Sequence record: MK268344.1
Reading direction: 5' to 3' (one strand)
DNA: 64,000 bases
Part shown: piece by piece, positions 43,284 through 64,000 of the stretch
How positions within the stretch are numbered: the first letter of the stretch is position 1
Layout of the letters: each line of letters opens with the position of its first letter
The notes under the pieces: generated by a model
Seen by the model: the letters and a program-made list of their open reading frames with translations, nothing else
Database searches by the model: none
Told to the model about the DNA's origin: nothing
Position numbers and translations under genes: made by a program

Positions 43284-43293
43284 TGGAGAATCC

Positions 43294-43967: not shown

Positions 43968-43976
43968 GAGATTATT

Positions 43977-44306: not shown

Positions 44307-44427
44307 TTCATGGGTTATTGAAGATATTCGCAGAATGCGGCAAACAAAAACCCGTACAAAAATCGAAGAATCATACTTAGAACTTCTATTGTGGTATGTG
44401 AAAGTACTTAATTCTAAGGAGTAATAT

Positions 44428-44766: not shown

Positions 44767-44777
44767 GGGGCTTTTTT
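44752..44777. terminator. bidirectional intrinsic terminator
   Basis: AAAAAGCCCC-GTTAA-GGGGCTTTTT at convergence of + and - blocks. Confidence 0.85.
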
Positions 44778-45423
44778 ATTCAAATGGATATGTTGGTGGA
44801 GTTATGGATGATTCTGTATACAACGCAGAATTGCTTATTCTGATTTGGTCATAGTAAGCATTAGCAGAAGTTTCATACCCACCAATTCGTAATGGTGTGT
44901 TATAAACACCCCATCGATCGCCATTAAGAATCATTTTCAAAGAACCACTGATATATAAACGAACATCGGTTCCGCTCTGTACTAATGCTACATGTGTCCA
45001 TACATTAAGTGGTATATTACTTGAAATTAGGCTAGTACCTTTCGTTCTACCCTGTAAGTACAAATTACTTGTATAGATTTTTACACCACCAGTAACACCA
45101 GTACCATTACTGATATACCAGTTATTGGTATTTCTACCAACAGCATACATGTAAAATTCAATAGTATAATCACCTTCTTGTTTAGATACGTTAAGATCTT
45201 GCATTTGATCCACAGCTAAACTGATAAAACCAGAAGTGAATCTAAATGATTTCACTTGTTCGGGTAATACTATAGTACTGTCTATAGAAGGAGTACTGTT
45301 TAATGTAATAACCCTTCCCGGATTCCAAACATCTTTGAATCCATCTTTAGCTCTCATGAGCATACCATATTTTTTATCTGGTGCTGTATTAGCATATGTT
45401 AATAATCTTGAAAATGGTATCAT
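44776..45423 (-). CDS. MIPF-array protein: LamG/concanavalin-like domain
   Basis: MIPFSRLLTYAN; YTIEFYMY...WTHVALV...LYISG...LRIGG...YDQIRIS. Confidence 0.8.
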   Translation of the reverse strand: MIPFSRLLTYANTAPDKKYGMLMRAKDGFKDVWNPGRVITLNSTPSIDSTIVLPEQVKSFRFTSGFISLAVDQMQDLNVSKQEGDYTIEFYMYAVGRNTNNWYISNGTGVTGGVKIYTSNLYLQGRTKGTSLISSNIPLNVWTHVALVQSGTDVRLYISGSLKMILNGDRWGVYNTPLRIGGYETSANAYYDQIRISNSALYTESSITPPTYPFE

Positions 45424-45496
45424 TTTATTTTCCTTAATTTTGCAGACATATATTTAATTAGAAAAATCCCCTAACTTTGACAGTACATGGATACAT

Positions 45497-46627
45497 TTAA
45501 AAAGGTAAATCCGTCTGTTCAGAAATAATATAACTCAATGGTGTTTGGCATATCGAATAATTTTTACCAGCCATACTACTAGGTGGATATCCACTCATCC
45601 AAATTTTATTACCTGACCAGAAATAATTAATATACGTTCCACCACTATATGACATATTCGTATTATAAGAACTGAAATCTACTTCTTTCCATGATTCAAA
45701 ATATGGTAAATTATTGCTGGACTGACTATTAATAGGACTATACCCTGTACTAACAAGTTTATTTGTATCAGAATTGTGTAGATATAATCTACTAGGAGAT
45801 GGAGATATATTGTCATTATAAAATTTACTCATGTCACCTATATTGAATCCAACATTAATACTTTTTTGACTTAAACCTGAAACCCCTGTATTTGATGTAC
45901 CGGTAACATGGATAATATTATCAGTACTTATAACAATTATACCATTATTATAATAAATGGTATTAGGTGTGAAAGATATATCTTTAAGTACTTCGGTAAA
46001 CGTAACTTTATCTCCCGGTTGGTCATTTATTTGCAGGGAGTTATTATTTCCAGCACCCCAAATAGTATTATCATTTTTTACAATAAAACATGTGTCTCCG
46101 CCAGCATCACCAAAAACACTTTTAACATTTTCAGACATTAATACCCAATCACTAACAAATGTTTTAGTTCCATTTCCAATAGAACCATTGCGATTATATC
46201 CTCTACCATAAAGTTTACCATCATTTAACAAAACAAAGACAGTGTATCCAGCGATAATATTTTTAATATTAGATATATCGAAAGCTGAAAAGTACTGACT
46301 TACATCTGTAAATCCCTGCTGGATTGTATTCGCATTATGAAAGCAATATAATGATCCAGTAGCATACATTTTACCATCAGTCTTATGAGCAAAAGTAACA
46401 TACCCTGTCCAGAAGTTTACAACATCTTGTGCAGACAAGACAATATCTCCTGTTATATTCAAAGCTGTACTTCCACCCCATAGGTAATCATTATCAACAC
46501 CATGTGCATATAAATCCCCGTTTTCTAAGAGGATCAGACCACGGGTGTTATATGACAAAATTTTTTTAATACTTGGTAATCCGGGTGCTATATTAGCATA
46601 ATTTAATATACGAGTGAATGGTATCAT
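45497..46627 (-). CDS. MIPF-array protein: RCC1/BLIP-II-like beta-propeller
   Basis: MIPFTRILNYAN; repeats of (L/M)YxxGxNxxGxxG; AAGGAG RBS fixes start. Confidence 0.8.
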   Translation of the reverse strand: MIPFTRILNYANIAPGLPSIKKILSYNTRGLILLENGDLYAHGVDNDYLWGGSTALNITGDIVLSAQDVVNFWTGYVTFAHKTDGKMYATGSLYCFHNANTIQQGFTDVSQYFSAFDISNIKNIIAGYTVFVLLNDGKLYGRGYNRNGSIGNGTKTFVSDWVLMSENVKSVFGDAGGDTCFIVKNDNTIWGAGNNNSLQINDQPGDKVTFTEVLKDISFTPNTIYYNNGIIVISTDNIIHVTGTSNTGVSGLSQKSINVGFNIGDMSKFYNDNISPSPSRLYLHNSDTNKLVSTGYSPINSQSSNNLPYFESWKEVDFSSYNTNMSYSGGTYINYFWSGNKIWMSGYPPSSMAGKNYSICQTPLSYIISEQTDLPF

Positions 46628-46638
46628 TTTATTTCTCC

Positions 46639-47817
46639 TTACGTGTTCCACGGTAATTTTATTGGTGTGAATTTTGGATACAAAATAGTTGCTTCTAAAC
46701 CGGGTAAGTACTTACCTTGTCCAGCACCATAAACATTCCCATTAACATCACACAGTATTGTTGAATAATTTCCACATGCAGTTATTGTTTTTATTTCTGA
46801 ACCTTTTACTTGTACATCCCCTCCACCAAAAATAGTTGGTAGGTAATTAACAATAGTTGCCACAGTAGAACCAGTACCAGATGAATACGAACTCGCATTA
46901 TTATATCCATTAACCATCAATCTATCATAACCATCAACAATATATGTAAGAACATTAAATGTAGTGAATGATGATTTTGCAGGTAATGACAATGTATTAG
47001 TAACTAATGTTGGTTTTTGAACCGGGGCAGGTGAAGCAGTACTTCCCGGTGTTGCAGTACTATAATAATTTGTACCCCATGAATATACATTACCATCAAT
47101 TGTGATACATTTATAGGATAATGCATCGCTTGATAACGATTTACACTTTTGATTATTTGGTAACACCAATCTTGTAAATGATAAAAGTGTAACCCCGTTA
47201 TTGGCAATGCCAGAATTATTATCATTTCCACATCGGTATAGTTCTCCGGTTTTAGTAAGGAGCCATGTTGCAATATTTCCATTAACATCAAGTACTTCCT
47301 CTATTGGCCCACCAGTATGCTGTAACATAGTCCATGTTAATGGTGCGGTACTTAATCCAAATGATGGATAATTAGTTGGACTAATTACTTTTACAACCCC
47401 AGAACTATCAATTTTATATAATCCATGTCTAGTAGTAAATAACTTATGAATATCATTGCCATCTGATAGCATTAGATCAGTGAAATCAGTAAATGTATTT
47501 GTATTCGATGCATTTGGTATAACAGACGCAATCCAACCCGTATAAAACCATTTTCCATCTACTGTTTTGATTATACATCCCGGAGTCATATCTTCTATCC
47601 AAAAGTCTTCTACGTCATCGCGAAGAATATGCCATCCATCTAAAAAATTATTAATGTCTTGACCATTGCCAAATTCACCATTACTACTTTCACCGAATGC
47701 ATATAATATATTATTATTATCTAACAGATAAAGTGCTTTTTGCCATCCTGCTATTTTCTTTACAAATTTGTTTTGTACGGTATTTCCATACGTTAATATC
47801 CTTGCGAATGGTATCAT
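46639..47817 (-). CDS. MIPF-array protein: RCC1-like beta-propeller
   Basis: MIPFARILTYGN; LYAFGESSNGEFG, VYSWGTN. Confidence 0.8.
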   Translation of the reverse strand: MIPFARILTYGNTVQNKFVKKIAGWQKALYLLDNNNILYAFGESSNGEFGNGQDINNFLDGWHILRDDVEDFWIEDMTPGCIIKTVDGKWFYTGWIASVIPNASNTNTFTDFTDLMLSDGNDIHKLFTTRHGLYKIDSSGVVKVISPTNYPSFGLSTAPLTWTMLQHTGGPIEEVLDVNGNIATWLLTKTGELYRCGNDNNSGIANNGVTLLSFTRLVLPNNQKCKSLSSDALSYKCITIDGNVYSWGTNYYSTATPGSTASPAPVQKPTLVTNTLSLPAKSSFTTFNVLTYIVDGYDRLMVNGYNNASSYSSGTGSTVATIVNYLPTIFGGGDVQVKGSEIKTITACGNYSTILCDVNGNVYGAGQGKYLPGLEATILYPKFTPIKLPWNT

Positions 47818-49010
47818 TTTATATCTCCTTGATTTACATTCAATCCATGTTTCATTGATTCTTTCGTTAAATCTTTTGGGAATTTACCAAATTTGTCTGA
47901 TATATTAGTATAAGTATCATATGTAATTATTTCTGTTTTAGTATTAAATCTACCACACATATATATTGAACCATCTTTCAAGTATACATAAGTTGCTGAG
48001 TTACCTAAATCAAGATACACAATATCATTAGTATTAAATGGAACTTGAACTTTTACTGGAGATACTCTAACGGTTCCATCATTTAATCCTCTAAATGAAG
48101 TATTTCCGGTAACATACATACCTTCATTTGTGTAATACATAGTTGTATTACAGTTTGAAAATGAATTATCAGCAAGACCTATAATACTGGTTCTCATAGG
48201 CCATGAATTACTTATTATAGTGGTTGATGTTAGATTATTAGTAGAACCATTACCAAATACACCATTAAAACCAAATCCTCTTCCATACCACGTTTTATCA
48301 ACATAAGAAGGAAAAATTATTGCATATTGATGATCCTGTAGTGATTTACCATATATCTCATCAGTACTAGCATTTCCAATTAATACTGGATATGAATAAA
48401 AAGTACTTTCAGGGGCTGATGAAAATATACTAGCTATATTTTGACCACCACCATGTACTTGACCCGATGTATTAATTGTCCACCAGTTTGTACCACTATT
48501 ACCTATAGCTATAATATTTGTACTTACTAAATTCCAATTTGTATATGGCACTGTACTAGAGTTTAAACCCCTTTGTGAACCAATCACTCTGAAAAAATTA
48601 TTATTATCTATGAAACCAATACTAGGGGAACCTGTATTAAATGAAACTGTATCAATAATAATAGAGCCTGAAGAAAAGAAAATATCTTCTTTGAAAGTTG
48701 TTTCCATTGTATTGTCATTACTAGTACGATAAAATCTAGAACCCGTATAATAGACTTTATTATTAGTTTCTTGAAGCATCAAAGAGTTCCCAAATTGATC
48801 CATCCAGAAATTTTTTACGTTATTTCTTATAAGTGTCCAATCTTCATGCCATACTTTTGCTTGACCATCACCAAAAGCACCATTGCCTCTACCATGCAAT
48901 TCCCCATTACTTAATAAAATCATCCAAGATGCTGTACTGAATTGTATTTTAACAATCTTAGAATCTTCCGCTATATTGCCATAATTTAACATTCTTGTGA
49001 ACGGTATCAT
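47814..49010 (-). CDS. MIPF-array protein: RCC1-like beta-propeller
   Basis: MIPFTRMLNYGN; GELHGRGNG, GRGFGFNGVFG. Confidence 0.8.
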   Translation of the reverse strand: MIPFTRMLNYGNIAEDSKIVKIQFSTASWMILLSNGELHGRGNGAFGDGQAKVWHEDWTLIRNNVKNFWMDQFGNSLMLQETNNKVYYTGSRFYRTSNDNTMETTFKEDIFFSSGSIIIDTVSFNTGSPSIGFIDNNNFFRVIGSQRGLNSSTVPYTNWNLVSTNIIAIGNSGTNWWTINTSGQVHGGGQNIASIFSSAPESTFYSYPVLIGNASTDEIYGKSLQDHQYAIIFPSYVDKTWYGRGFGFNGVFGNGSTNNLTSTTIISNSWPMRTSIIGLADNSFSNCNTTMYYTNEGMYVTGNTSFRGLNDGTVRVSPVKVQVPFNTNDIVYLDLGNSATYVYLKDGSIYMCGRFNTKTEIITYDTYTNISDKFGKFPKDLTKESMKHGLNVNQGDIK

Positions 49011-49020
49011 CCCCTTCTCC

Positions 49021-50187
49021 TTATATTATTCTTGGTTGCATTGGAACTTTATTCCATTTGGTAAAATCTTCAGTTGACCCCGGTATCCATCTTGAATTAC
49101 CCACTGCATATACCGTATTTTCATGCCAATAATACACGTAATAACCACCTTGAACAACATGTGTTGGATCGAAGATAATATCTTGAAGAAAACCATTTTG
49201 CACTAAGGTTGAATATATTATTGTTGATGTATTACCTATTCCAAATCTACCATAGTAATCAGAACCAGAACTATATATAGATTCTGAAGTACAAAGATAA
49301 ATTGCTCCTTCACTGCAAAAACTATTTGTGTACTGAACAAATTTACTGGCTAATTCAGAATCAATTAATGTATTTTTTGTTAGTGTCGTGTAATAAGAAG
49401 ATGCAGTAGTCCCATCAGCACATAAACCATTACCACGAAACCCGCTCATATATACATCATTGCTTTCTGTAATAATCAAGACATTATTAGCACTTAAAAT
49501 AATGGTTTTTATTGGCAATGTAAACGGTACTTTATAGAATATAGGTTGCTCACTTGAAAATCCTAGACCTAAAGTTCCATATAAATTTCTTCCAGTACCG
49601 AAAAGTTCACCTGATGTACTAATATAAAATGAGGCATCACTTGATGAACTTAATGAACTATAAATTTCTTTCACACCACTAGCTACATGTTTAAATGATG
49701 CTGAAGGTGTAGTACCTAAACCAATATTACCGTACTGATTATTTGATGCATATGTTCCTTGACCAATAGCATAAAGCTGTTCATCTTGTAATAAAAATAA
49801 TCCTCTACTTCCAAACATTAATTTGGCTTTGTTTAAATCAAAGTTATTGAAAGTTGATGTTATTTCAGTAAATGTATTTAAATATCCAGATGATGCTCCC
49901 AATGATGCTCGATAACCAGTAAAAAACACTTTATTATTTTCAGTAATAATTAAAGTACAGTCAACACCAACATATATATCTTTTATATTTTCGATTGGAC
50001 ATTTTACCCATGTATTTTTGTTTACTAATGTTCCATCACCTAATTGACCACTTGTATTATCACCAGTACCAAATGCTTGACCATCATCAAATAGTACAAA
50101 AATAAATCCATAATACGAAACAACTTTTTTAATTTTAGTTTTTGGTAAAATATTACCATATGATATAATTCTTGGAAACGGAATCAT
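49021..50187 (-). CDS. MIPF-array protein: RCC1-like beta-propeller
   Basis: MIPFPRIISYGN; GTGDNTSGQLG, GTGRNLYGTLG. Confidence 0.82.
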   Translation of the reverse strand: MIPFPRIISYGNILPKTKIKKVVSYYGFIFVLFDDGQAFGTGDNTSGQLGDGTLVNKNTWVKCPIENIKDIYVGVDCTLIITENNKVFFTGYRASLGASSGYLNTFTEITSTFNNFDLNKAKLMFGSRGLFLLQDEQLYAIGQGTYASNNQYGNIGLGTTPSASFKHVASGVKEIYSSLSSSSDASFYISTSGELFGTGRNLYGTLGLGFSSEQPIFYKVPFTLPIKTIILSANNVLIITESNDVYMSGFRGNGLCADGTTASSYYTTLTKNTLIDSELASKFVQYTNSFCSEGAIYLCTSESIYSSGSDYYGRFGIGNTSTIIYSTLVQNGFLQDIIFDPTHVVQGGYYVYYWHENTVYAVGNSRWIPGSTEDFTKWNKVPMQPRII

Positions 50188-51341
50188 TTTATCTCCTTAA
50201 ATGTAGTACCCGGTGGGAATGATAATTCTTTAAATTGTACAGTTGCTGGAGTACTAGGATAACCAACAACAAAACGTTGTTGTCCACAAAAGAACATTTT
50301 ATTCTCATCGTACCATATACTTGATTCATTTCCAAAGTATCCTTTTACTTTAGAAGGATTTAACCCACTATTTCCTAGATTAGTTGTCCACAACCCAAGA
50401 TTATCATCATCTGTACCAGCCCCCATATAAGTAAGATTACCACTGAAGTATATAGTAGGATTATCACTATCTTTATTCATTGATACAAACGCATTAAATG
50501 TATTATTACTTGTACCCAAAATATAGCTATTATCAGGAGTAACCTTAGTAATATTTGGAAGAGGAATAAAGGTGTTACTTGAACTACCTCTACCGGTTGC
50601 CTGAGCACCAGTACTATATATAGTACCATCACTTAATACAATCCAAGTACTATTATTAGCGGAAGAAACACCATCAACTTTATCAAAATTATAAATGGAA
50701 TTTATGTTTGTCCAAGTATTAGACTGTGTTGTTCCATTATATCCAAGAGAACCTCCTTGATTCCATCCAGTACCAAATAAGATACCATTATTATCAATAT
50801 AAAAGGAATTATTACTACTTGATGTAACATACTTTACATTTGATGCGAGCTTTATGTAAGTGCGATGATCTGTTGTATTACCAGTACCTAATACTCCACG
50901 ACTGTTAGTATATGCTAAACCATATAAGTCATCATCTTCAGTAATTCCGAAAACAGTATTATTAGTTATACTGAATTTGACTATTGGCTTATTTCCACCA
51001 ACACCAATTAGATTTGTAATATCAACTGGTTCCTGTGTACCCCTTGTGTTACCAGTAAAAGCTATATCTCCTGCACCATAAATCGTATCACCTTTTCTAT
51101 AAGCAATACCACTATTCCATGAATCTATGATATCAGTAACTCCAGTATCAACCACTACATAAGATTTAACAGCAGAAGTTGAACCATCCCTACTGATTTG
51201 TCCATAACGATTGTATCCAGCACCCCAAAGTGTTCCGTCATACCATAAAATATAGGTGTCTAATGCGTGAGAAATTTTTCGAACTGCGGTAGGCTTTACA
51301 GCTTCATTTCCATATTTCATAATTCTTGCAAATGGTATCAT
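50184..51341 (-). CDS. MIPF-array protein: RCC1-like beta-propeller
   Basis: MIPFARIMKYGN; WGAGYNRYGQI, FGTGWNQGGSLG. Confidence 0.82.
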   Translation of the reverse strand: MIPFARIMKYGNEAVKPTAVRKISHALDTYILWYDGTLWGAGYNRYGQISRDGSTSAVKSYVVVDTGVTDIIDSWNSGIAYRKGDTIYGAGDIAFTGNTRGTQEPVDITNLIGVGGNKPIVKFSITNNTVFGITEDDDLYGLAYTNSRGVLGTGNTTDHRTYIKLASNVKYVTSSSNNSFYIDNNGILFGTGWNQGGSLGYNGTTQSNTWTNINSIYNFDKVDGVSSANNSTWIVLSDGTIYSTGAQATGRGSSSNTFIPLPNITKVTPDNSYILGTSNNTFNAFVSMNKDSDNPTIYFSGNLTYMGAGTDDDNLGLWTTNLGNSGLNPSKVKGYFGNESSIWYDENKMFFCGQQRFVVGYPSTPATVQFKELSFPPGTTFKEIK

Positions 51342-52039
51342 ATTTGAACCTCCCTCATCTTAATATATTGTATCCTACCTTTGAATAAAACCGGATTAGC
51401 ATTATTATCACCATCAACATATGAACCAAATAAACTAAAATACTGATTAACAGGAGATAATATTTGATACCACGGAAATGTTTGTGTTTCATTAAAAAGT
51501 TCAGAATGTACTGTAATAGAAATACCTTTTCTAAATTCCATTTTTATGGTATCCCAAGCATTGGGGTTAGCCCATGTAGGAAGTACTCTGGCATAATTAT
51601 TTCCCCAATCTATGAATACTTGATTATATGTAGAACTATATTGGTTGAATGCATTAACAAAACCCGATATTCTTCTGGAATTATAATTACCAGTTTCAAA
51701 TAACGCTTGTCCTCCGATTGGTGAACATTTCATTCTATATTCTATGTCAAATGCATTATATAGACTGAAGTCCAATTTGGTTCCTTTTACCGGATTTAAA
51801 GTTCTAAAATAAGCACTACTATTTGTACAATCTAATACATTAGACCCAATTTCATCATCATATACCACAGTTCCTGCGACGGGATTAATTGTACCGATTT
51901 GTGAACGTTGTAAAAATTGATTACCTGCTCTATCAGGAACGCCCGTACTACCAATTTCTTGAGTACTGTAATCTACATCAAGTATCATTTTTTCAGGAGC
52001 GATATTCCCGTATGTTAATATCTTTGAAAAAGGTATCAT
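51338..52039 (-). CDS. MIPF-array protein: LamG/lectin-like beta-sandwich
   Basis: MIPFSKILTYGN; FDIEYRMK...LFETG...WDTIKMEF...FKGRIQYIKM. Confidence 0.7.
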   Translation of the reverse strand: MIPFSKILTYGNIAPEKMILDVDYSTQEIGSTGVPDRAGNQFLQRSQIGTINPVAGTVVYDDEIGSNVLDCTNSSAYFRTLNPVKGTKLDFSLYNAFDIEYRMKCSPIGGQALFETGNYNSRRISGFVNAFNQYSSTYNQVFIDWGNNYARVLPTWANPNAWDTIKMEFRKGISITVHSELFNETQTFPWYQILSPVNQYFSLFGSYVDGDNNANPVLFKGRIQYIKMREVQI

Positions 52040-52110
52040 ATATCCCCCATAATTCTTGTAATTATACTATATTTAATTAAAAAAGGCCAGTACTAGTATT
52101 GTACTGGCCT
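52032..52110 (-). repeat. cassette junction repeat type A (terminator + TAAATA + RBS + start); copies at 57716-57792 and 61268-61342
   Basis: GGTATCATATATCCCCCATAATT..TGTAATTATACTATATTTAATTAAAAAAGGC.AGTAC nearly identical at three junctions. Confidence 0.85.
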
Positions 52111-52115
52111 TTTTA

Positions 52116-53237
52116 TTATTTCCAAGGCATTTTTTCATCGGCAAGTCGAGTAAGCCTATTGTAAAATGAAATTCCATTTATTGGTGTATTACCACATACA
52201 AACATATCATCGTTATTATCAATAACCATTGAAAATAAATTATCACCACCAAAGGATACAATATTAGATACTGTACCAAATATCATTGGTGTAAGTGTAG
52301 CTTGTGCTGACGAAGCTGCACCATTACCACATTGTCCATATATATTAAATCCACAACGCCATATTTGATTGTTAATCCATATCATCGGTGACATACCCGC
52401 ACTATTTGATAAAGAACCAATTACTCTTAATGGTACAGAAGGATCAAATTGAGTACGGATCTGTACTGAATTAAGTACTGGATTCGTATTACCAACAGAA
52501 CCTTGACCTTGCGTGTTAATTGATGCAGTTCGTATAGAACCATCTTTCATAAAATAATATGTTGTATAAAATGTATTAGCAGTGTACAATACATCATCCA
52601 ATGTTTTTGTAAATGTAGGTACTGAGGTTGGCGTAGTACCAGATAACATCATCGTTCCTGCATAATAACAGCTTCCATCACTTAATATTAAACAGGTTGT
52701 ATTAAATCCACAGGACATGTACTGAACGTTTTCGATTGAACTATATGTGAATTTAGTAACACTAGCAGAACTACCAGTACCGAAACACCCCGCACTATTG
52801 CTTCCATAAAAGAACCATTTTCCATTATTCAATAATACTCTAATACCTTCAGCAATGTAAACACTTTTTATATCATCTGGCGATACCCCAAAATCTGAAA
52901 AGTACTTCGTTACATTAACAAAGGATCTTGTATTTTGTGCTATTGGCATACCATATGTACTTCCAGTGTACCACATTATATTATCTTCATCTATAGCCAG
53001 TGTTCCATGTACACCACCGAAATATCTTTTCACTCTGGTTAATACCTTAGTCCACGATGATAGGTTCGTTGTATCACCAGTTCCTAATTGACCCAAGTTA
53101 TTCTGTCCAATTGCATATAGATCACCATTACGGTGTAAATACCATGCTGCACTGTAATTTACCTGAACTCGTTCACCCAATATAGTCGGTGCTTTAACTT
53201 CATTGCCATAACTTAATATTCTTGTAAATGGTATCAT
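52116..53237 (-). CDS. MIPF-array protein: RCC1-like beta-propeller
   Basis: MIPFTRILSYGN; LYAIGQNNLGQLGTG, CGFNIYGQCG. Confidence 0.82.
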   Translation of the reverse strand: MIPFTRILSYGNEVKAPTILGERVQVNYSAAWYLHRNGDLYAIGQNNLGQLGTGDTTNLSSWTKVLTRVKRYFGGVHGTLAIDEDNIMWYTGSTYGMPIAQNTRSFVNVTKYFSDFGVSPDDIKSVYIAEGIRVLLNNGKWFFYGSNSAGCFGTGSSASVTKFTYSSIENVQYMSCGFNTTCLILSDGSCYYAGTMMLSGTTPTSVPTFTKTLDDVLYTANTFYTTYYFMKDGSIRTASINTQGQGSVGNTNPVLNSVQIRTQFDPSVPLRVIGSLSNSAGMSPMIWINNQIWRCGFNIYGQCGNGAASSAQATLTPMIFGTVSNIVSFGGDNLFSMVIDNNDDMFVCGNTPINGISFYNRLTRLADEKMPWK

Positions 53238-53259
53238 TATTATTCCTCGATTATTTTAA

Positions 53260-54429: not shown

Positions 54430-54472
54430 ACATTCTCCTTATTTGTACAATTATATTATATTTAATTAAAAA
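54413..54472 (-). repeat. 60-bp exact direct repeat (cassette junction type B), second copy 55682-55741
   Basis: CTAGCAAATGGTATCATACATTCTCCTTATTTGTACAATTATATTATATTTAATTAAAAA identical in both. Confidence 0.9.
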
Positions 54473-54513
54473 AAGGCCAATACTGTATCAGTACTAACCG
54501 ACATTTAATTTAA

Positions 54514-55698
54514 CTATAATTTCCACGGCAATTGCATTAGAGATTGAAAATATCCATTAAAAATATCATTTGTTAAACAAGTTGGGTTCGTGTTTTTCCC
54601 GCAGCCCAAAATAATATTTTCATCCCTGCATATATATCCATTATAATAATTACATATAATAATATCATGTTCTTTGCAAATTATATCAGGAACTATAGTG
54701 TATGTACCTATATATTGGGGTGATGTTCCTAAACCCAACGCATAATTATAATTATTTCCAGTACTATATAATCTATTATTAATATCAACATACATGGAAA
54801 CGCCACTATGCATTGTATATACTTTACCAAAATAATTATAATCATTACATGAATTCGGTAATTCCACGGTGATCATATTACCTGATGTATTTTGATTCGT
54901 ATTCGTTGTATTTCCATCACCGAATGCCCCGGCTGAATTCGTACCAATACAATATGCTGTTGACTTAGTATACGCAATCGTATTGTTAGTAGACATCCTA
55001 ACCTGAAGTATAGGTTCACTTACAGTACTAAACATTCGATGAAAACGAACAATATTCTCATTATTAATGCCACCCTCAGTACTGGTTTTTATACAATATG
55101 ATGCATTCCTGCCAGCACCCCACACTGTCCCGTCTTTTTTAATATATACACTATTTTGTGAAGTAATAGAACAATCTTCAACATCAGTATCTATCAATGT
55201 CAATGGGAAATATCCAGTACTACCAACACCTAATTCACCATAACGATTAAGTCCAATACCATAAAGTTCACCATTGTTTAATAATACAAATGTATTATTC
55301 TCAGGAACTATTTTTTTAATATCTGATATATTAATAGAACTAAACAAGTTAGAGATATCAGTAAATGTCGTATACCCTGATGCTGTACCACTGTTATTCT
55401 GAATTGCTCGATCGCCTGATAAAAATATTTTATCATCATGCGAAATATATATAGTACTTCCAATCCCATTAGTACATAACTTAATATCCGATTCTGGTAT
55501 TTTAAATAAAGATCTAGGTCTATCTGATTTATGACCCAACCCCAATTGACCATATGCGTTATACCCACCAACATAGGCATCGCCGGTGCTTAATAAAATA
55601 CTATAAGAAACATTAGAACTAAAACTTAAATTCATTTGTTTGATATATGGTATTTCTCTTATATTACCGTATGTCAATATCCTAGCAAATGGTATCAT
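54514..55698 (-). CDS. MIPF-array protein: RCC1-like beta-propeller
   Basis: MIPFARILTYGN; GGYNAYGQLGLG, GLNRYGELG. Confidence 0.82.
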   Translation of the reverse strand: MIPFARILTYGNIREIPYIKQMNLSFSSNVSYSILLSTGDAYVGGYNAYGQLGLGHKSDRPRSLFKIPESDIKLCTNGIGSTIYISHDDKIFLSGDRAIQNNSGTASGYTTFTDISNLFSSINISDIKKIVPENNTFVLLNNGELYGIGLNRYGELGVGSTGYFPLTLIDTDVEDCSITSQNSVYIKKDGTVWGAGRNASYCIKTSTEGGINNENIVRFHRMFSTVSEPILQVRMSTNNTIAYTKSTAYCIGTNSAGAFGDGNTTNTNQNTSGNMITVELPNSCNDYNYFGKVYTMHSGVSMYVDINNRLYSTGNNYNYALGLGTSPQYIGTYTIVPDIICKEHDIIICNYYNGYICRDENIILGCGKNTNPTCLTNDIFNGYFQSLMQLPWKL

Positions 55699-55775
55699 AC
55701 ATTCTCCTTATTTGTACAATTATATTATATTTAATTAAAAATGACAGTACTACATAAGTACTGTCATTTTTCTTA

Positions 55776-56579
55776 TTATGTAGTTGTGCCTACATTACTT
55801 GTGGGAAATCTACGACCACCTCCCCAAATAATACGCACACCACCCAATCCTTCATCAGTACTTGTATTACCAGCACCACGATATATGGTTGTACCCGGAA
55901 CCGCACTACCTGAACTACCACGATAATGTGCAGCAGAACCACGTCCAGATTCACCCATACCAAATAAACCAACTGCACCACCAGAAGCAGCTATTCCGCC
56001 CCCTCCTCCACCACCACCAGCACCAGAACTGCCAGATGAACTACTTGCACCATTACCACCATTACCTTCATAGCCACCAGCACCACCTGAGCCGCCTCTT
56101 TCATATCGATAAGTACCAGAAGTCGGGCCACTACCACCTCTACCACCATCGCCGCCGCCATCGTTTATTTGACTGGCATTCTTTCCACCAACACCTCCTG
56201 ACCCACCGGCACCACTAGACATTGTAGTACCATAACTGCCCATTTTTCCACCACCAGCAATGCAAGCATTTGAGTTATTTTGTAATACATAAGAATTTCC
56301 ACCATCAGAATTGGCTGTATAACCATTTACACCAACTGTAACTGATAGTACTTCACCGGGAGTTACCGCTACATCATTCCTATAACTTAAACCACCACCA
56401 CCGCCACCACCCCCAGTACTTCCAGTGCCAACCCTACCACCACCGCCAACACATAATATACATATAGATTCAACATCATCTGGTACTATAAACTCAAATG
56501 TTCCAGATTGAACCCAGACCATTTCCCCTTTTGGTGGTAATTTATTTCCGTATGTTAGCATTTTTGTAAATGGTATCAC
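55776..56579 (-). CDS. MIPF-array protein: glycine-rich tail-fibre-like domain
   Basis: GTG start, MIPFTKMLTYGN; SGTFEFIVP...VGGGG...VTPGEVLSVTVG...GGGG...GGVRIIW. Confidence 0.8.
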   Translation of the reverse strand: MIPFTKMLTYGNKLPPKGEMVWVQSGTFEFIVPDDVESICILCVGGGGRVGTGSTGGGGGGGGLSYRNDVAVTPGEVLSVTVGVNGYTANSDGGNSYVLQNNSNACIAGGGKMGSYGTTMSSGAGGSGGVGGKNASQINDGGGDGGRGGSGPTSGTYRYERGGSGGAGGYEGNGGNGASSSSGSSGAGGGGGGGGIAASGGAVGLFGMGESGRGSAAHYRGSSGSAVPGTTIYRGAGNTSTDEGLGGVRIIWGGGRRFPTSNVGTTT

Positions 56580-56589
56580 GATTGTCTCC

Positions 56590-57723
56590 TTAATTAATTC
56601 TTATTTTAGTAAAAATATTATTTTCTGAACCATCAGATTTTTTTCCCGGTAAAACACTAATACTTCCAACTCCCCAAATATCATTTCCATCAAATATTAA
56701 AGAATAAAAAGTTCCACCCAAAATCTGTACTTTTTTGTTATCTTGTACTGTTGTAAATTTAGGAATTTCTTTAAAAATAGAGGATGCCTGTGGTAAGCCA
56801 CTATATTCAACTAGACCCGTTGCATAAAATGTACCGTTAGTACCTAAAAATATATTTCTGTTTGGTGTACCCTTTAACTTTCCTCCAATAACCATTTGGG
56901 ATGGCATGTTTATTTTGGTTGACCAAGATTTAAGCTGAGTATTTAAATTTACACCGTCACCTAATATCCCATTAATTTGCCAACCAGAACCTGCTATTGT
57001 CGTTGGTGTCCAATATGATAATGTACTAGCACGTGTTGCCATAAAGGATGATGTGCCACCATTAAGTATTATCCCCCACGTATACTTATTTTCTGAATTA
57101 CCAGAACCAAATTGACCATAAGGCTGTTGTCCCGCTCCATACAAATATACGGAAGTGGGTGAAATTCCACGAGCTATCATAGAATAGTCTCCAACATATA
57201 ATTCTTGATGGTAAGTAGTACCAACTCGCGTAAATGAACTTATCCGATTTGTAGATCCTAGACCACACGCCCCATTACTATTCCAACCTCTTGAATATAA
57301 TTGATTGTCGATATCAATATATCCCATAGTGTATAAACCAATATCTAATTCTTTCACCGAATCATAAGATGGCATAGTATTAGTTATATCATCACCTTCT
57401 ATTGGAGATAATCCACCAGTAGTATTCTTGGTTCCTAATACATCATAGTTTCCATTAAAAATCCATTTTCCATCCTTAGTATATATTAATGTACTCTTAG
57501 AACCACACCAAACATCTTCTGCATTTCTATCCAGTACTACAAACTCGTAGTACTGATATGTTGCTGTGCAATCCTTTAACTGATTAGAATTGTTATAACC
57601 AATACCATATAGTAATCCACTTTCCATTAATACCACATAATGTGTATCACCACATGATATTTTCTTTATATTACTTGGTACAACTACATTACCATATCCC
57701 AATATCCTCGCAAATGGTATCAT
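56590..57723 (-). CDS. MIPF-array protein: RCC1-like beta-propeller
   Basis: MIPFARILGYGN; ISCGDTHYVVL, RGWNSNGACGLG. Confidence 0.82.
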   Translation of the reverse strand: MIPFARILGYGNVVVPSNIKKISCGDTHYVVLMESGLLYGIGYNNSNQLKDCTATYQYYEFVVLDRNAEDVWCGSKSTLIYTKDGKWIFNGNYDVLGTKNTTGGLSPIEGDDITNTMPSYDSVKELDIGLYTMGYIDIDNQLYSRGWNSNGACGLGSTNRISSFTRVGTTYHQELYVGDYSMIARGISPTSVYLYGAGQQPYGQFGSGNSENKYTWGIILNGGTSSFMATRASTLSYWTPTTIAGSGWQINGILGDGVNLNTQLKSWSTKINMPSQMVIGGKLKGTPNRNIFLGTNGTFYATGLVEYSGLPQASSIFKEIPKFTTVQDNKKVQILGGTFYSLIFDGNDIWGVGSISVLPGKKSDGSENNIFTKIRIN

Positions 57724-57797
57724 ATATCCCCCATAATTCATGTAATTATACTATATTTAATTAAAAAAGGCTAGTACGCACTTGTACTAGCCATCTC

Positions 57798-58943
57798 TCA
57801 ATTAATAGATTTAATATCAACTTCTGCACCCAATGACAATTTAGTAAAGGTAGTTGTATCTTGACTTAAGGAAGGAAAAGAAGAACCACTATACCAAATT
57901 GTATTTCTAGTTATTATCATAGTATTAGTTGAATTAGCACATATTCCAATTATATCATTAAGTACTAACTCATCTGGTAAATTAATAATTGTCTTATTTT
58001 GGGGCGTAACCTTATTACCTAAACCCAATTGTCCACTTGTATTATTTCCAGTACAATATAAATCATTATTCACACTAAAAAATGTACCATAACGTGTTAA
58101 TATAGAATATGGATGATTGAAAAACTTATTAGCACCAACCATACTATACAAACTCGTAATACCAATTTGGGCTGTACTTCCATTACCCATGCAATAATAA
58201 GTACCTAATCCCGCTCCATATATCCAACTTTGATTAATAGACATAACCGCCGATGGCATTAAACTCCATGAAATGTTAGAAGTTCTAGGAGCAGAAGCAA
58301 CTTGTACTTCATTCGGCGTAGGTGATGTTCCAAGCATCGATGGTGCATTACCAAAACCACAGATAACATCATATGCACTGAACCATTTTCGATAAGCCGT
58401 TATGCCATTATAAAGCTGTACATCTTTAACCCTAGAAACCATTAAAGTAGGTACTGATAACATTCCATTTAAGGCAACCTTATTACTTAAACTATAAGTA
58501 CTATTCCTACCAACCATATATAAATCACCATATGTGCGATCAGTCGAATTCGGTATTAAATAAGCCATGTTGTTTAAAGTAGCTGTAATGTTATAAGCAT
58601 CACTAGGAATAGTAAAGGGAAGTTTGGTAAAACTATATACATTACTATTAAGCCCTAAACATGTGCGGTTGCCAGATATATAGTACTGACCATCATTTCC
58701 TTGAATGATCACACTCATATCAGTAGCACATACCACTTTTTTAATATTACCTGCAATCAATCTCCATTCAGATAATGGTGCAGAATCACCAGTACCCAAT
58801 TGACCCTGACTATTATCCCCTAATGCAAATAAATTACCAATAGAATCTATATATAATGCAAAATAATTCAATCCACAGAATTGAACTATTTTTGCATCCG
58901 GTAATGTGTTCCCATAATCCAATATCCTAGCAAACGGTATCAT
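57798..58943 (-). CDS. MIPF-array protein: RCC1-like beta-propeller
   Basis: MIPFARILDYGN; LGDNSQGQLGTG, TGNNTSGQLGLG. Confidence 0.82.
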   Translation of the reverse strand: MIPFARILDYGNTLPDAKIVQFCGLNYFALYIDSIGNLFALGDNSQGQLGTGDSAPLSEWRLIAGNIKKVVCATDMSVIIQGNDGQYYISGNRTCLGLNSNVYSFTKLPFTIPSDAYNITATLNNMAYLIPNSTDRTYGDLYMVGRNSTYSLSNKVALNGMLSVPTLMVSRVKDVQLYNGITAYRKWFSAYDVICGFGNAPSMLGTSPTPNEVQVASAPRTSNISWSLMPSAVMSINQSWIYGAGLGTYYCMGNGSTAQIGITSLYSMVGANKFFNHPYSILTRYGTFFSVNNDLYCTGNNTSGQLGLGNKVTPQNKTIINLPDELVLNDIIGICANSTNTMIITRNTIWYSGSSFPSLSQDTTTFTKLSLGAEVDIKSIN

Positions 58944-60136
58944 ATCTCATCCTCCGGTCTAAATCCAGTTGGTCGTACAAAAAAGTATTGGGCTGTTGTA
59001 TATCCCGGTATCGTATAATTAGAACTATCTCCCGCTGCCAAAAAATTATTTCCGTAAGAATAATATAATGCATTACGATTATAATTAATTAGTTCAGCAG
59101 AAGGTTCAATACCACTCCAATAAAAATATCTTTGATATGTATTATTACCCACACCAAAAGCTCCACTAGCATTACTAGCACTGAAATAATACCCATAAGC
59201 AGCACCACTGCTCTTATCAATACGTTGCATTAGTATCGCCGGGTACATTGGATCACCACTACCACCAAACATTTTACCTTTATATTCCAAATCAAATCCA
59301 GAATCATCACGCATTATAACTTCAGAAAAGGTAAGTACCGAACCATCAGCAGATGCGTTTTTATTAAATGCACCACCACCTGCACCACATGCATATAACT
59401 TGTTAGTACTAGGTGAATATAACACTGCTCCCGTTCTACATACCGCAAATACATCATCAAAGGATGTGTATAAATCTGAAACTCCAGCAGGTAGTACTAT
59501 CGGCTTAGGTAGTGTGATTGTAGATGTATTCTGGGAAACTCCTATGTAAGAACCGTTACCCGCTGCATATATTTTCGAATCACCTCTAATAACAAATAAA
59601 CAATTGTTATCATTATTCACAAAATCTACAACATCTCGGTATATTAGTGTGAATTTATTATAAGTCGTCGATGTAGAAGGTGCTAATAATTGTCCATTAC
59701 TATTCATCCCAATAGCATACAAATCACCACTCGTACTTAAAATGTATATAGCTCTCCATGCTACCTGTACTTTCTTTATTTTATCCAATGCAATAACATC
59801 AGTAATTAATGAAGTTATATCTAAATTGGTAAATGTTATATTACCACTAATCCCAAGAGTCCCACTAAAACCACTATAGACGTATTTTTCCGCTTTGGTT
59901 TTATAAAGGGAACCCCATCCACCTAACCAACAATCATCTACATCAGTAGCCATCAACGCTTTTCCATCCCTGCCACTGATTACCTCACCATATGCAGGCA
60001 AACCAAATGAATATAAATTCCCACTCCCACCTAAAACCATAGTACTGCTATAATTGCAACAAATTTTTTTGTACTTACTTACGTCTGGCTCAGGTGCAAT
60101 ATTCCCATAACTCAATATCCTTGCAAATGGTATCAT
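58940..60136 (-). CDS. MIPF-array protein: RCC1-like beta-propeller
   Basis: MIPFARILSYGN; LYAIGMNSNGQL; GGGAGG RBS fixes start. Confidence 0.8.
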   Translation of the reverse strand: MIPFARILSYGNIAPEPDVSKYKKICCNYSSTMVLGGSGNLYSFGLPAYGEVISGRDGKALMATDVDDCWLGGWGSLYKTKAEKYVYSGFSGTLGISGNITFTNLDITSLITDVIALDKIKKVQVAWRAIYILSTSGDLYAIGMNSNGQLLAPSTSTTYNKFTLIYRDVVDFVNNDNNCLFVIRGDSKIYAAGNGSYIGVSQNTSTITLPKPIVLPAGVSDLYTSFDDVFAVCRTGAVLYSPSTNKLYACGAGGGAFNKNASADGSVLTFSEVIMRDDSGFDLEYKGKMFGGSGDPMYPAILMQRIDKSSGAAYGYYFSASNASGAFGVGNNTYQRYFYWSGIEPSAELINYNRNALYYSYGNNFLAAGDSSNYTIPGYTTAQYFFVRPTGFRPEDEI

Positions 60137-61275
60137 ATTTCCTCCCACGGTAATTTAACTTTCTTATACTCAATCGTTTCATTTATACTTCCATCACCTA
60201 ATATCCATCTACCATCACCTGATTGATACATCTCTTCATCTGTATATAAACAAGATGTAAGATTCGATGAAGATAACCCAATGACCTTAGAAAAATCAAT
60301 ATTCAACGTACATTTCGTAAATCTTCCAATGCCAGTTTCACCACCATATGCAGTACCAAAAATTCCCGTTTTATATCCAGTACTGTATACTCCAGTATCA
60401 CTAACAAAAGCCATATTAAATATACCATTTCCTCGATGGATTGGCCTTAAATTACTCGTATCACCACTATAGGACACAATCTGATAATATAATTGATTCA
60501 CGTGCGTTGTACTTACATTACCATTACCTAATTGACCATATATCTGATTACCAGCCGATGAAAGAGATTTGTTGATATTAAAATACATACTTGAACTATA
60601 ACCAGTTCCAACCATCAATGCATTCTGTGTGAAAAACATTGGGCTTCTAATTGCATTATTATTACCTAATCCAAATTCACCATTAGCATTTCTACCCCAT
60701 ACGTACATATCACCATTGTTGCATAACGCAACTGCACTTCCCGCCGCTGTTGTATATTGAATGTAATTAACGTCAGTTATTCCCTGAACCTCGGTCAGTA
60801 CTGATAACGAACCAGAACCAGATATTCCACTATTCACATTACTATTTGAACCAATTGCATATATATTTCCATTAATATCTTTAAAATGTAACATCTGTTG
60901 ATGACAAAATACGTCAACAATAGTAGAAGGATCAATAGAACCAAATTCAAATAACATTCTTACCCAACTACTAGCAGTATCATTTATACCACCTAATCCT
61001 GTATACCAAAAAGTACCATCACTCTTCTTGATTAAGGTATAATTCCCATATACCCATACATCAAAAACATTTGTCATGATCTCAACACTTCTTCCATAAT
61101 ATGATACATTAGTATTAGTAAAACCTAATTGATTATAATTGTTAGTTCCACATCCCCATAATACACCTTTACTATCCAGTATTACAAAATGAGTACTGCC
61201 AAATTGTGCTTTTTTTATAGTTCTCTTAAACGAAACAATGTTCCCATAATCCAATATCCTCGTAAATGGTATCAT
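60133..61275 (-). CDS. MIPF-array protein: RCC1-like beta-propeller
   Basis: MIPFTRILDYGN; VWGRNANGEFGLG, AGNQIYGQLG. Confidence 0.82.
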   Translation of the reverse strand: MIPFTRILDYGNIVSFKRTIKKAQFGSTHFVILDSKGVLWGCGTNNYNQLGFTNTNVSYYGRSVEIMTNVFDVWVYGNYTLIKKSDGTFWYTGLGGINDTASSWVRMLFEFGSIDPSTIVDVFCHQQMLHFKDINGNIYAIGSNSNVNSGISGSGSLSVLTEVQGITDVNYIQYTTAAGSAVALCNNGDMYVWGRNANGEFGLGNNNAIRSPMFFTQNALMVGTGYSSSMYFNINKSLSSAGNQIYGQLGNGNVSTTHVNQLYYQIVSYSGDTSNLRPIHRGNGIFNMAFVSDTGVYSTGYKTGIFGTAYGGETGIGRFTKCTLNIDFSKVIGLSSSNLTSCLYTDEEMYQSGDGRWILGDGSINETIEYKKVKLPWEEI

Positions 61276-61348
61276 ATATCCCCCATAATCTCTTATTATA
61301 ATATATTTAACCAAAAAAGGCCAGTACTATCACTGTACTGACCTAACT

Positions 61349-62473
61349 TTAGTTTGTTGGTAAAATCATCGGCCTTAATGCCGCTGTATCATCTTTTCCC
61401 GGTAAAAATTGTAAATTAGCACCAGATATATAAAATCCAGTACTGTTCTTATATACATAATGATTAAATCCACCCTGTACCTTATCAAATATTTCACTAT
61501 ACATAAATCTAAACGAATTAACTACACCCACTACACCATTTACATCAAACTGCTGACCTAATACATATAAACCACTCTGTAGACCCTGTACTTCCGGTGG
61601 TATAACAACAACTACTCCCCTTGTATTATATGAACATACCATATTACGTGCCGTAACTAAATCAGTACTAAAAGATAATATACGCTGAAAATCACTAATC
61701 GTACCATTCGGTGTATTACCTCGTATATATATACCATCCGTCCTTATCGCAATTACAACATAATCTCCACAATGGATATTTTGTGAAGTTAACGTGGCTT
61801 GAGTATATACATTATAAGTACTCGTCGAGGTATTCGCAACCTGCTTAAATGAATTATTACCAACAGCTAATATGTTAGAATTCACAGTAGTAATAAAACA
61901 ATTAAATGCACTCGCACTTATAGACATAATCGTTTTCGGAGCAGTACTACATAACGCTAAAGCATAGTGTGCAGGTGTATTATTTCCTTGCCCTAATGTC
62001 ACCCCTTTTCCCTGAGAGTATAAAGCACCATAATTAGAATCAGATATCCTTCCAACTAATACCATCATACTATTATCATTCACTTGTATGTCCTTTATGT
62101 AGCAATCAGCGTATTCATATATAGTACTAATATCCGGGATTATTAATGTGAATTTAGTATACGTCCCATTATCATTTCCTGTATATAAGGTATTCTTACC
62201 ACTTAAATATATCGAATTGCCTTTTCTTATTAATACCGCATATGATGCCATACCAGTGTAAACTTCATCAACTCCTGTATCACACCGAACCCATTCATTA
62301 CGGGTCTCTGTATCACCTAACCCCAATTGCCCCAATGCATTATCCCCTGTACTATAAAGAACTTTATCAGTACTTAATGCATAGAACGATTGTGAACCAA
62401 CATATGTCGAAATTATTGAGGATGGTAAGGGGGCTTTATTCCCGTAATCCAATATCCTAGCAAACGGTATCAT
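61349..62473 (-). CDS. MIPF-array protein: RCC1-like beta-propeller
   Basis: MIPFARILDYGN; STGDNALGQLGLG. Confidence 0.8.
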   Translation of the reverse strand: MIPFARILDYGNKAPLPSSIISTYVGSQSFYALSTDKVLYSTGDNALGQLGLGDTETRNEWVRCDTGVDEVYTGMASYAVLIRKGNSIYLSGKNTLYTGNDNGTYTKFTLIIPDISTIYEYADCYIKDIQVNDNSMMVLVGRISDSNYGALYSQGKGVTLGQGNNTPAHYALALCSTAPKTIMSISASAFNCFITTVNSNILAVGNNSFKQVANTSTSTYNVYTQATLTSQNIHCGDYVVIAIRTDGIYIRGNTPNGTISDFQRILSFSTDLVTARNMVCSYNTRGVVVVIPPEVQGLQSGLYVLGQQFDVNGVVGVVNSFRFMYSEIFDKVQGGFNHYVYKNSTGFYISGANLQFLPGKDDTAALRPMILPTN

Positions 62474-63669
62474 ATATTATCCTCTCTTAAATTAAAATCT
62501 GTTATTAATGTAAAATTCTCAGATAATGGTGTACTTAATGGCGTAAATCCAACACCAGCACTTGTTGTTAACCCCGAACCCTTTGCATATAGTAACGGGG
62601 ACATATTCAATGCACAAAGAGCAAACATCCTCGTATTTGTATAAGCCCTATATGTGTTCCCATTGCCCTGTACTGTATATCTTGGCGTGAATGTGAGAAG
62701 ACGATCTCCACCACCTCCATCCATATAACCCGCAAAATATAGTACACCATTAGTATCAGATAGGATATTCGTCCAATACGTCTGGATGGATGTCCCAAAT
62801 AGTGATAATAAATTACCCGGCTTAAATGCTAATTGTGCAGTATATAACCGAACATTCGCATCTACACTAATATTACCTATCCCCCACGCACCAGCATAAT
62901 TTCTTCCTGAACAATAATATTTTCCGTCCGTCCTAAAAAGCATAAAATGTGTTTGACTTATACGAAATGCATTATATTCATAATCTACCTCAGACGTAGC
63001 CTCAGAAAATAATTGTGTCCATGTAGTATATACAGTACTTTGAGATGTAGTCTGCATCTGTTGATAAGTGTTATCTCCAGTACCCCAAAATGTTCCATCC
63101 AAATCCTGATATACTCCATTAATATTCGTTATCCAACAATCCTGTACTGACGATTTTAATAGTACTGGCGTGAAACTAGGAGTTTTATTAGCACTACCAA
63201 AGTAACCATAATCGTTTTTTCCATGTGCATATAATGAACCATCATTCAACAAAATATAAACTGTGTTGTAATTCATTGTTATTTTCTTAATCTTTAATAT
63301 ATCAAAATACGTAGAATAAAATGAAGTCTTATCAACCCATGTGGCTGTATTACTAGTACCATCATATATCGTCTGACGACCTGTATAAAATAATTTATCA
63401 TCATTCGATAATACAAACGTTCCATATGTACTACCCCATGCAGTCTTTACATCCCTCTTAACTAAATGCATCTCACCATAGTAATTTACACCAACTGGAA
63501 AACCCAAAACATATCCATAATTCTTATCACAGGTTCCCCATAACTCTCCATTATTCAAATGCATCCACATCGTCGCTGCGGTATTATCCGAATCCAAAAA
63601 GAAGTCAATCACTTTTGCGGGTGCTGCTACCTTATTCCCATACTCTAATATCCTAGTAAATGGTATCAT
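62470..63669 (-). CDS. MIPF-array protein: RCC1-like beta-propeller
   Basis: MIPFTRILEYGN; HGKNDYGYFG, GTGDNTYQQM; TAAATA at 63699-63704. Confidence 0.8.
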   Translation of the reverse strand: MIPFTRILEYGNKVAAPAKVIDFFLDSDNTAATMWMHLNNGELWGTCDKNYGYVLGFPVGVNYYGEMHLVKRDVKTAWGSTYGTFVLSNDDKLFYTGRQTIYDGTSNTATWVDKTSFYSTYFDILKIKKITMNYNTVYILLNDGSLYAHGKNDYGYFGSANKTPSFTPVLLKSSVQDCWITNINGVYQDLDGTFWGTGDNTYQQMQTTSQSTVYTTWTQLFSEATSEVDYEYNAFRISQTHFMLFRTDGKYYCSGRNYAGAWGIGNISVDANVRLYTAQLAFKPGNLLSLFGTSIQTYWTNILSDTNGVLYFAGYMDGGGGDRLLTFTPRYTVQGNGNTYRAYTNTRMFALCALNMSPLLYAKGSGLTTSAGVGFTPLSTPLSENFTLITDFNLREDNI

Positions 63670-64000
63670 ATTATCCCCCTATAATTATCATTATATCATA
63701 TTTACCCATATATATACCCTTTTTAATATATTAGAAAACTCTATAGTACTACCATATATACACCATATAAACGCATAGAAAGCCATAAGAGAAGACTTCT
63801 CCAATATTATACACAGGTGTAGCTCCTGTAGATAGCGGCTCTTAGACGCTTATCGAAAGGATTCAACACCTGTAAAAATACCCAATTGTTAATATGTACA
63901 GTACTTTTACTTTTAAAATTATTCAGGAAATAGTTACACATTGAACTATATTAGTAAGTACTAATGGAAGCTACTATTCAGTACTTACCCCCTTCCGCTA

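Follow-up and report, generated by a model that had tools for sequence, protein, structure and literature searches.

The last 64 kb of the genome of the Salmonella phage Munch (MK268344.1, 350,103 bp), a Rak2-like jumbo myovirus, was analyzed as one stretch of 64,000 nucleotides (nt), referred to in the following as the window. The window is the right end of the record and is identical to it across the whole region discussed here; window positions equal record positions minus 286,103. Near its end lies an array of 17 consecutive genes on the minus strand (44776–63669, CPT_Munch_534–550), which spans 19 kb. All 17 products start with the same 12-residue peptide, M/V-I-P-F-x-[RK]-[ILM]-[LMI]-x-Y-[GA]-N, referred to as the tag. 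Its consensus, M-I/L-P-F-x-R-hydrophobic-hydrophobic-x-Y-G-N, is followed by a short Pro-rich linker. A preliminary description of the locus had reported this shared N-terminus on highly diverged bodies, and had proposed that it is a portable peptide that docks interchangeable ligand-binding heads onto the virion or directs them into it. The shared N-terminus was found in all 17 genes by pattern search, by profile and in the annotation.

Pfam places RCC1-type repeats (PF00415, PF13540, PF25390) in 14 of the genes. From the upstream end of the array, these RCC1-like genes lie at 62470–63669 (399 amino acids, aa), 61349–62473 (374 aa, overlapping the gene upstream by 4 nt, which is the overlap found inside transcription units), 60133–61275 (380 aa), 58940–60136 (398 aa), 57798–58943 (381 aa), 56590–57723 (377 aa), 54514–55698 (394 aa, a single-gene unit), 53260–54429 (389 aa), 52116–53237 (373 aa), 50184–51341 (385 aa), 49021–50187 (388 aa), 47814–49010 (398 aa), 46639–47817 (392 aa) and 45497–46627 (376 aa). 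Four of the mechanically listed open reading frames (ORFs) had alternative starts further upstream, and the tag coincides with the start annotated in GenBank; the true starts of 60133–61275 and 45497–46627 thus lie within the listed ORFs. A Laminin_G_3 domain (PF13385, E = 6e-9) was found in the 215-aa product of 44776–45423, and a Gly_rich_2 domain (PF21722) in the 267-aa product of 55776–56579, which starts with GTG; the latter match, at 25.6 bits, was a marginal pass of the curated cut-off of 24.3 bits.

The product of the remaining gene (51338–52039, 233 aa) belongs to phrog_6011, "virion structural protein", and gave no Pfam match at an E value of 0.1. It had initially been described as a second LamG-like protein. 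When it was aligned with the LamG profile by hhalign, the probability was 94.5% with the tag columns included and 1.1% without them, showing that the match arises from the shared tag alone; the protein could not be assigned to LamG and is listed without a fold. The other parts of the initial census, namely 14 RCC1-like proteins, one LamG protein and one glycine-rich protein, stood. The array thus includes at least three, possibly four, body types. In GenBank, the RCC1-like genes carry the product name "DNA condensation protein", inherited from eukaryotic RCC1. The isoelectric point (pI) is 5.2–7.5 for all 14 propellers and 5.2–7.7 for 16 of the 17 array products; judged from these values, the products are probably not DNA-condensing basic proteins, and the name is probably a misnomer.

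The array is divided into seven units, each with a TAAATA core ahead of it, as had been proposed from the sequence by likeness to the T4 late promoter. Five perfect or near-perfect copies of the 16-nt motif TTAAATATAnTATAAT, compared with 0.2 expected, are located on the minus strand at 61295–61310, 57745–57760, 55719–55734, 54450–54465 and 52061–52076. Two weaker copies, also on the minus strand, are found at 63690–63705, with two mismatches, and at 45443–45458, where only the core TTAAATATA is present. The motif lies ≈25 nt upstream of the start codon, and five of its seven copies follow just downstream of a terminator hairpin. The hairpins are located between units at 61318–61344, 57769–57792 and 54475–54499 on the minus strand, and at 55737–55771 and 52080–52114, where the sequence is palindromic and the annotation assigns the hairpin to the minus strand. 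In the whole genome, the 16-nt motif occurs as a perfect copy only within the array. The shorter ATAAATA, which matches the core of the array promoters, precedes the sheath, capsid, scaffold, fibre, baseplate and terminase genes of Munch, and the same motif was proposed as a late promoter in the paper on phage CBB. In T4-type late promoters, a gp55-type sigma factor reads a −10-like element that is rich in A/T and of the TATAAATA type; the array has the TAAATA core at all seven units, and Munch encodes a gp55-type late sigma factor. Judged from these elements, the array would be expressed late in infection. Two adjacent units are preceded by an identical stretch of 40 nt (54430–54469 and 55699–55738), and the terminator stems have GTAC-rich arms in common; the terminator, promoter and ribosome-binding site seem to have been duplicated as one block.

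A loose regular expression for the tag, applied to the six frames of the window, matched the 17 sites only. A position-specific scoring matrix (PSSM) of the tag was then run over the six frames of the complete Munch genome, read as seven unjoined pieces. This N-terminal profile search, which the preliminary description had suggested, gave 31–40 bits at the 17 starts (37.5 bits for 62470–63669), and the next best score anywhere in the 350-kb genome was 10 bits. Chance is excluded as the source of the 17 occurrences, and the low score of the next best hit shows that, in Munch, only this array carries the tag; no tagged gene was found elsewhere in the genome by the PSSM. The 14 propeller paralogues share 82% identity in the tag and 20% in the rest of the protein, in agreement with the divergence of the bodies reported earlier. 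The propeller alignment has nine invariant columns, seven of which are in the tag (M1, I2, P3, F4, R6, Y10 and N12), the other two being glycines in the body.

The first and second codon positions of the tag are fixed and the third positions vary, with four codons used for Gly11 and three each for Arg6, Leu8 and Pro3. The conservation is therefore at the protein level; conservation of the DNA as such was ruled out by the synonymous variation, and, judged from the codons, selection acts on the tag peptide and not on the DNA. These data bear on the idea that the tag serves expression, folding or turnover, being recognized by a phage chaperone, by the ClpS/ClpA/ClpP homologues or in translation initiation. 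The conserved segment is indeed located at the extreme N-terminus, and the phage has genes for ClpS, for a ClpA-like ATPase and for a Clp protease. However, the synonymous variation makes a signal in the mRNA unlikely, a start with Met-Ile or Met-Leu does not make a classical ClpS degron, and the tagged proteins persist in virions, as described below. We consider such a role highly improbable.

To place the tag relative to the folded bodies, AlphaFold models of two array products were used. The propeller encoded at 49021–50187 was predicted with a predicted local distance difference test (pLDDT) score of 80.9 and a predicted template modelling score of 0.84, and Foldseek matched it to UVR8/RCC1-type seven-blade propellers with a template modelling (TM) score of 0.75. 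Its residues 1–10 had a pLDDT of 48, with a weak helix at residues 4–11, and the first blade strand begins at residue 19. The model of the LamG protein (44776–45423) had a pLDDT of 85.8; residues 1–17 were modelled as coil with values below 50, and the jelly roll starts at residue 21. Foldseek returned only generic ConA-like jelly-roll hits for this model. The best of them were the lectin-like jelly-roll subdomain of clostridial neurotoxin and NTNH proteins (10–16% identity, TM ≈0.6), with a GH43 carbohydrate-binding domain alongside; as far as the model goes, these matches reflect generic similarity of ConA-like folds only. According to both models, the tag is an appendage outside two unrelated folds. 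The possibility that it is an integral "velcro" strand of the propeller, which the preliminary description had named as the finding that would speak against a docking role, was rejected on this basis.

A short, partly hydrophobic peptide outside the fold might also act as an oligomerization or co-assembly motif, by which the N-termini of several heads, possibly of different paralogues, bundle together without a separate acceptor. The weak helix in one of the models and the dimeric or trimeric appearance of the capsid fibres of phage phAPEC6 are consistent with this idea, but 12 residues are short for a stable bundle, and the prolines at positions 3 and 5 of many variants disfavour a helix. Moreover, bundling by itself leaves the incorporation into virions unexplained, and we find this explanation quite improbable.

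Tagged relatives were found in the genera Asteriusvirus, Mimasvirus and Eneladusvirus, in a survey that left out RaK2 and K64-1. More than 100 tagged ORFs with at least eight body types were collected, and the tag was always N-terminal. The tagged bodies include RCC1, Kelch, an RCC1–Kelch fusion, several LamG subtypes, the glycine-rich type and the 233-aa type, and at least four further types had no Pfam match. Single-tag proteins of 667–688 aa occur in relatives; the one that was scanned is the fusion of an RCC1-like and a Kelch propeller, and heads can therefore be concatenated behind a single tag. Arrays of 4 to 15 tagged genes are present at the corresponding genome end of phAPEC6, CBB, GAP32, Xanthomonas phage XbC2 and BF, and four tagged genes of CBB (CBB_144, 247, 536 and 537), unlike those of Munch, lie outside the main array.

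The tag was also searched for beyond these genera. In IMG/VR, the back-translated tag matched ten contigs of 348–378 kb, including 121Q, GAP32, CBB and Serratia phage BF; the other matches were three ORFs of 32–37 aa, attributed to chance. Two matches, to a 16-aa ORF and to a sulfite reductase, were all that was found among 185,579 bacterial and archaeal genomes, and both are attributed to chance. When 1.84 billion representative proteins were searched with a profile built from the N-terminal 30 residues, 49 hits were significant; 46 of them carried the tag at the N-terminus and belonged to the same protein classes, whereas the other three were artefacts of low-complexity repeats. LamG homologues outside the clade, in Dickeya phage AD1 and the Vequintavirinae 4MG and PVP-SE1, had no tag. 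A general bacterial or phage signal was thus rejected, the matches being confined to Rak2-like contigs apart from the chance hits.

This distribution also bears on the possibility that the tag has no function of its own and was either left behind by tandem duplication or is a recombination anchor whose uniformity is maintained by gene conversion at the 5' ends. The array is tandem and plastic, with 17 genes in Munch and 14 in the 98.7% identical array of the Klebsiella phage fENko-Kae01 (325825–340038), and the regulatory cassettes, including the identical 40-nt regions described above, seem to have been duplicated. However, different folds cannot share descent from one duplicated gene, the peptide has been kept across three genera despite diverged third codon positions and bodies, and its N-terminal position in all but the low-complexity profile hits also speaks against a relic. 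We regard this as the least plausible of the explanations considered. In fENko-Kae01, the orthologue of the 233-aa protein appears to be split into two ORFs, and the array stops ≈330 bp before the annotated direct terminal repeat. The content of the array also varies among the ≈99% identical phages SE_PL, 7t3 and PHA46.

When tags were compared between genomes, genome-specific features were observed. All 17 Munch tags, those of the LamG, glycine-rich and 233-aa proteins among them, have Ile at position 2, where phAPEC6, CBB, XbC2 and BF have Leu; the orthologues of these three Munch proteins in other phages have Leu at this position. phAPEC6 and 121Q have Met7 and Lys9 throughout, and XbC2 has Pro5 throughout. 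The mean tag identity was 0.71 for different bodies in the same genome and 0.56 for the same body class in different genomes, values that are descriptive since the pairs are non-independent. The tag therefore appears, from these sequences, to follow the genome rather than the body, and this likeness suggests co-evolution with one partner per genome. Two variants, M-L-P-F-P-x-L-V-x-Y-G-N and M-L-P-F-P-I-I-S-x-T, coexist in Eneladusvirus and some Mimasvirus genomes, where they sit on overlapping sets of body types (e.g., in BF and XbC2), and the variant on the glycine-rich body differs between phages, being A in Munch and phAPEC6 and B in BF. The coexistence of two variants hints at two separate acceptor sites.

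Published proteomes show that tagged proteins are associated with virions in phAPEC6, CBB, GAP32, fENko-Kae01 and Eneladusvirus. In phAPEC6, mass spectrometry (MS) detected gp003, 005, 006, 007, 009, 010, 549 and 551 (PMC7247149), and all eight of these RCC1-like proteins start with the tag. CBB has 11 tagged proteins (144, 247, 536, 537 and 548–554), nine of which, all except 550 and 554, were detected by MS (PMC5259590); CBB_548 is the orthologue of the Munch LamG protein, and CBB_549 and 553 are orthologues of the 233-aa protein. The tagged protein gp001 of GAP32 was detected in the published virion proteome. In fENko-Kae01, CDS_517, 518, 525 and 526 were identified by LC-MS/MS (PMC11218385). 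These are orthologues of Munch array genes, namely the propeller genes 56590–57723, 47814–49010 and 46639–47817 and the glycine-rich gene 55776–56579, the last with 17 spectra. Virions of Eneladusvirus contain a glycine-rich "PE-PGRS" protein (PMC7760394), which is also tagged.

Some of these phages bear unusual appendages. The tail of CBB carries 119-nm hairs that end in "tiny terminal globular structures", and in phAPEC6 unassigned fibres are attached to three rings of the tail and to the hexamers of the capsid. The authors of the CBB study named 144, 247, 536, 537, 551 and 552, which were confirmed by MS and are absent from the hairless-looking GAP32, as candidates for the hairs (PMC5259590). 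All six carry the tag. A sequence search of the PDB found no solved virion structure of a Rak2-like phage. In fENko-Kae01, the closest characterized relative, the flagellum is needed for adsorption (PMC11218385); speculatively, globular heads on flexible hairs might be well suited to bind such a filament.

We propose the following model. The first 12 residues and the Pro-rich linker would form a flexible extension beyond the folded body and act as a common docking tag, read by a single putative acceptor site encoded by the phage. Different globular heads, both lectin-like and propeller, would be made late in infection and become low-copy, surface-exposed parts of the particle, most likely as the small globular ends or the decorations of hair-like fibres on tails and capsids. 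The outcome would be a diversified set of adhesins, and the RCC1, Kelch and LamG bodies are binding-type folds, as expected for such a set. We put the probability that the tag serves external display of interchangeable adhesin heads at about 0.5. The broader statement, that it is a signal for virion incorporation read by one partner, is likely to be correct. The interpretation offered in the preliminary description is thus supported in part: the tag is portable between at least eight body types and tracks the genome, lies outside the fold and is found on virion-associated proteins. A more specific version, in which a universal 12-residue plug and socket hangs changeable propeller, Kelch, lectin-like or glycine-rich heads on hair tips or capsid fibres, with two orthogonal plugs (MLPFPxLVxYGN and MLPFPIISxT) in some genera, is tentative, and somewhat doubtful in its entirety.

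Several points weigh against external display. Binding to an acceptor, the external position of the heads and binding of ligands are steps that we infer. The fENko-Kae01 preparation was a >300 kDa retentate only. Proteomic counts, which are semi-quantitative, were low, with 1–5 unique peptides per protein in phAPEC6 and 2–17 spectra in fENko-Kae01 compared with 106 for the capsid protein. GAP32 has tagged genes, yet hairs were not reported for it. Recombination at the 5' end could also yield the similarity of tags within a genome. Finally, an internal location is possible, given the T4-type head of Munch, with a capsid protein resembling gp23 of T4 (E = 7e-40) and a prohead protease of the Peptidase_S77 family, and the inner body of relatives.

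The last point corresponds to the chief competing explanation, in which the tag resembles the T4 capsid targeting sequence (CTS) and directs proteins into the prohead core, to be packaged with the DNA in the inner body and ejected into the host. The internal proteins of T4 have diverse bodies with only a conserved N-terminal CTS in common, and a CTS–GFP fusion enters the core (PMC3012670, PMC9958956). The head proteins of Munch fit this scheme, and phAPEC6 has an inner body, for which its authors proposed the RCC1-like proteins as candidates. On the other hand, the Munch products are β-propellers and jelly rolls of 24–45 kDa with acidic to neutral pI, unlike the small internal proteins, and the low peptide counts per protein contrast with ≈360 copies of each T4 internal protein. 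The tag on the CBB hair candidates also argues against an internal location. Prohead proteases of the T4 family cut after Glu, but there is no conserved Glu or fixed site behind the tag, the first Glu being found anywhere from residue 9 to 66. Overall, targeting to the core is unlikely.

Other genes surround the array or may be considered with it. Four consecutive plus-strand genes for small multi-pass membrane proteins (43240–44766, 109–123 aa) converge on it; Pfam gave no family for these four proteins. Paralogues with three transmembrane segments are also annotated beside the tagged arrays of GAP32, CBB, XbC2 and BF. A P-loop NTPase of 255 aa (42516–43283, plus strand) lies 1.5 kb from the array, and a similar-looking one directly adjoins CBB_536/537, the likeness being judged by eye from the two translations, unscored. 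Outside the window, Munch encodes a ClpS adaptor, confirmed by Pfam, as well as IF3 and peptidyl-tRNA hydrolases. Two further genes are named in GenBank as ATP-dependent Clp protease, which is ClpA-like in fENko-Kae01, and as Clp protease.

The expansion of RCC1-like genes and their detection in virions have been published. The tag itself, the spread over at least eight body types, the restriction to a single clade, the two-variant system and the coincidence with the hair candidates have apparently not been described. A full-text literature search for the peptide strings of the tag returned no paper, the Iyer–Aravind survey of jumbo phages makes no mention of these domains, and the paralogue table for CBB links 536–537 and 549–553 only. 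If the proposal is correct, it would provide a function for a gene expansion that ranks among the largest without an explanation in jumbo phages, and whose members are called "DNA condensation protein" in GenBank and in publications as late as 2026. It would also tie the array genes to the hairy appendages of these phages, which are likewise unexplained. The tag would be a minimal natural peptide that marks proteins for virion incorporation. It also offers an easy way to recognize, from sequence, all members of the system irrespective of fold, making the composition of the hairs and their ligands addressable by structure determination and proteomics. A plug and socket, if it exists, would be a combinatorial display of adhesins without a described counterpart in phages, accounting for both the hairs and the misnamed arrays.

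The principle that a short terminal peptide can steer diverse proteins into a protein shell is already known from the T4 CTS, encapsulins and microcompartments. The earlier remark that no tag shared across folds had been described overlooks the T4 system (PMC3012670, PMC9958956). As in IPI, IPII and IPIII of T4, a short, conserved N-terminal peptide is the sole feature common to diverse proteins and, as proposed for Munch, sets their incorporation into the particle, and in both cases the loci are polymorphic and the background of head assembly is T4-related. Unlike the CTS, the Munch tag is without a conserved protease site behind it, even though a protease of the gp21 family (S77) is present, and it is attached to large propellers and lectin-like jelly rolls of low apparent copy number rather than to small internal proteins. 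The circumstantial evidence for tags of the Munch type points to external hairs. Cargo-loading peptides of encapsulins and encapsulation peptides of microcompartments are also similar, being terminal peptides of 10–20 residues outside the fold that connect unrelated enzymes, through a flexible linker, to one shell protein. These, however, target the interior of a cellular compartment; in Munch, a tailed phage particle takes its place, with a probably external location and a putative acceptor.

Tailspikes and fibres with N-terminal adaptors, such as the tailspikes of CBA120, gp63.1 and gp66 of G7C and the branched fibres of the RaK2/K64-1 type, resemble the Munch system in that modular heads are placed on a common scaffold through a conserved N-terminus. 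Their adaptors are folded, comprise ≈100–300 residues and belong to trimeric fibres; in Munch, the corresponding element is a 12-residue peptide, predicted to be disordered, on apparently globular single-domain heads that begin at residue 19–21. A folded N-terminal adaptor domain of at least ≈100 residues was rejected for the tag, since the conserved part is only 12 residues long and predicted to be disordered. Arm-anchored decoration proteins of the lambda gpD type and Hoc-type proteins of T4 are likewise non-essential-looking binding modules on the surface, attached by a short piece at one terminus and perhaps responsible for weak adhesion to surfaces. In those systems there is usually one gene and one fold per phage, whereas Munch has 17 paralogous or analogous heads with one common plug.

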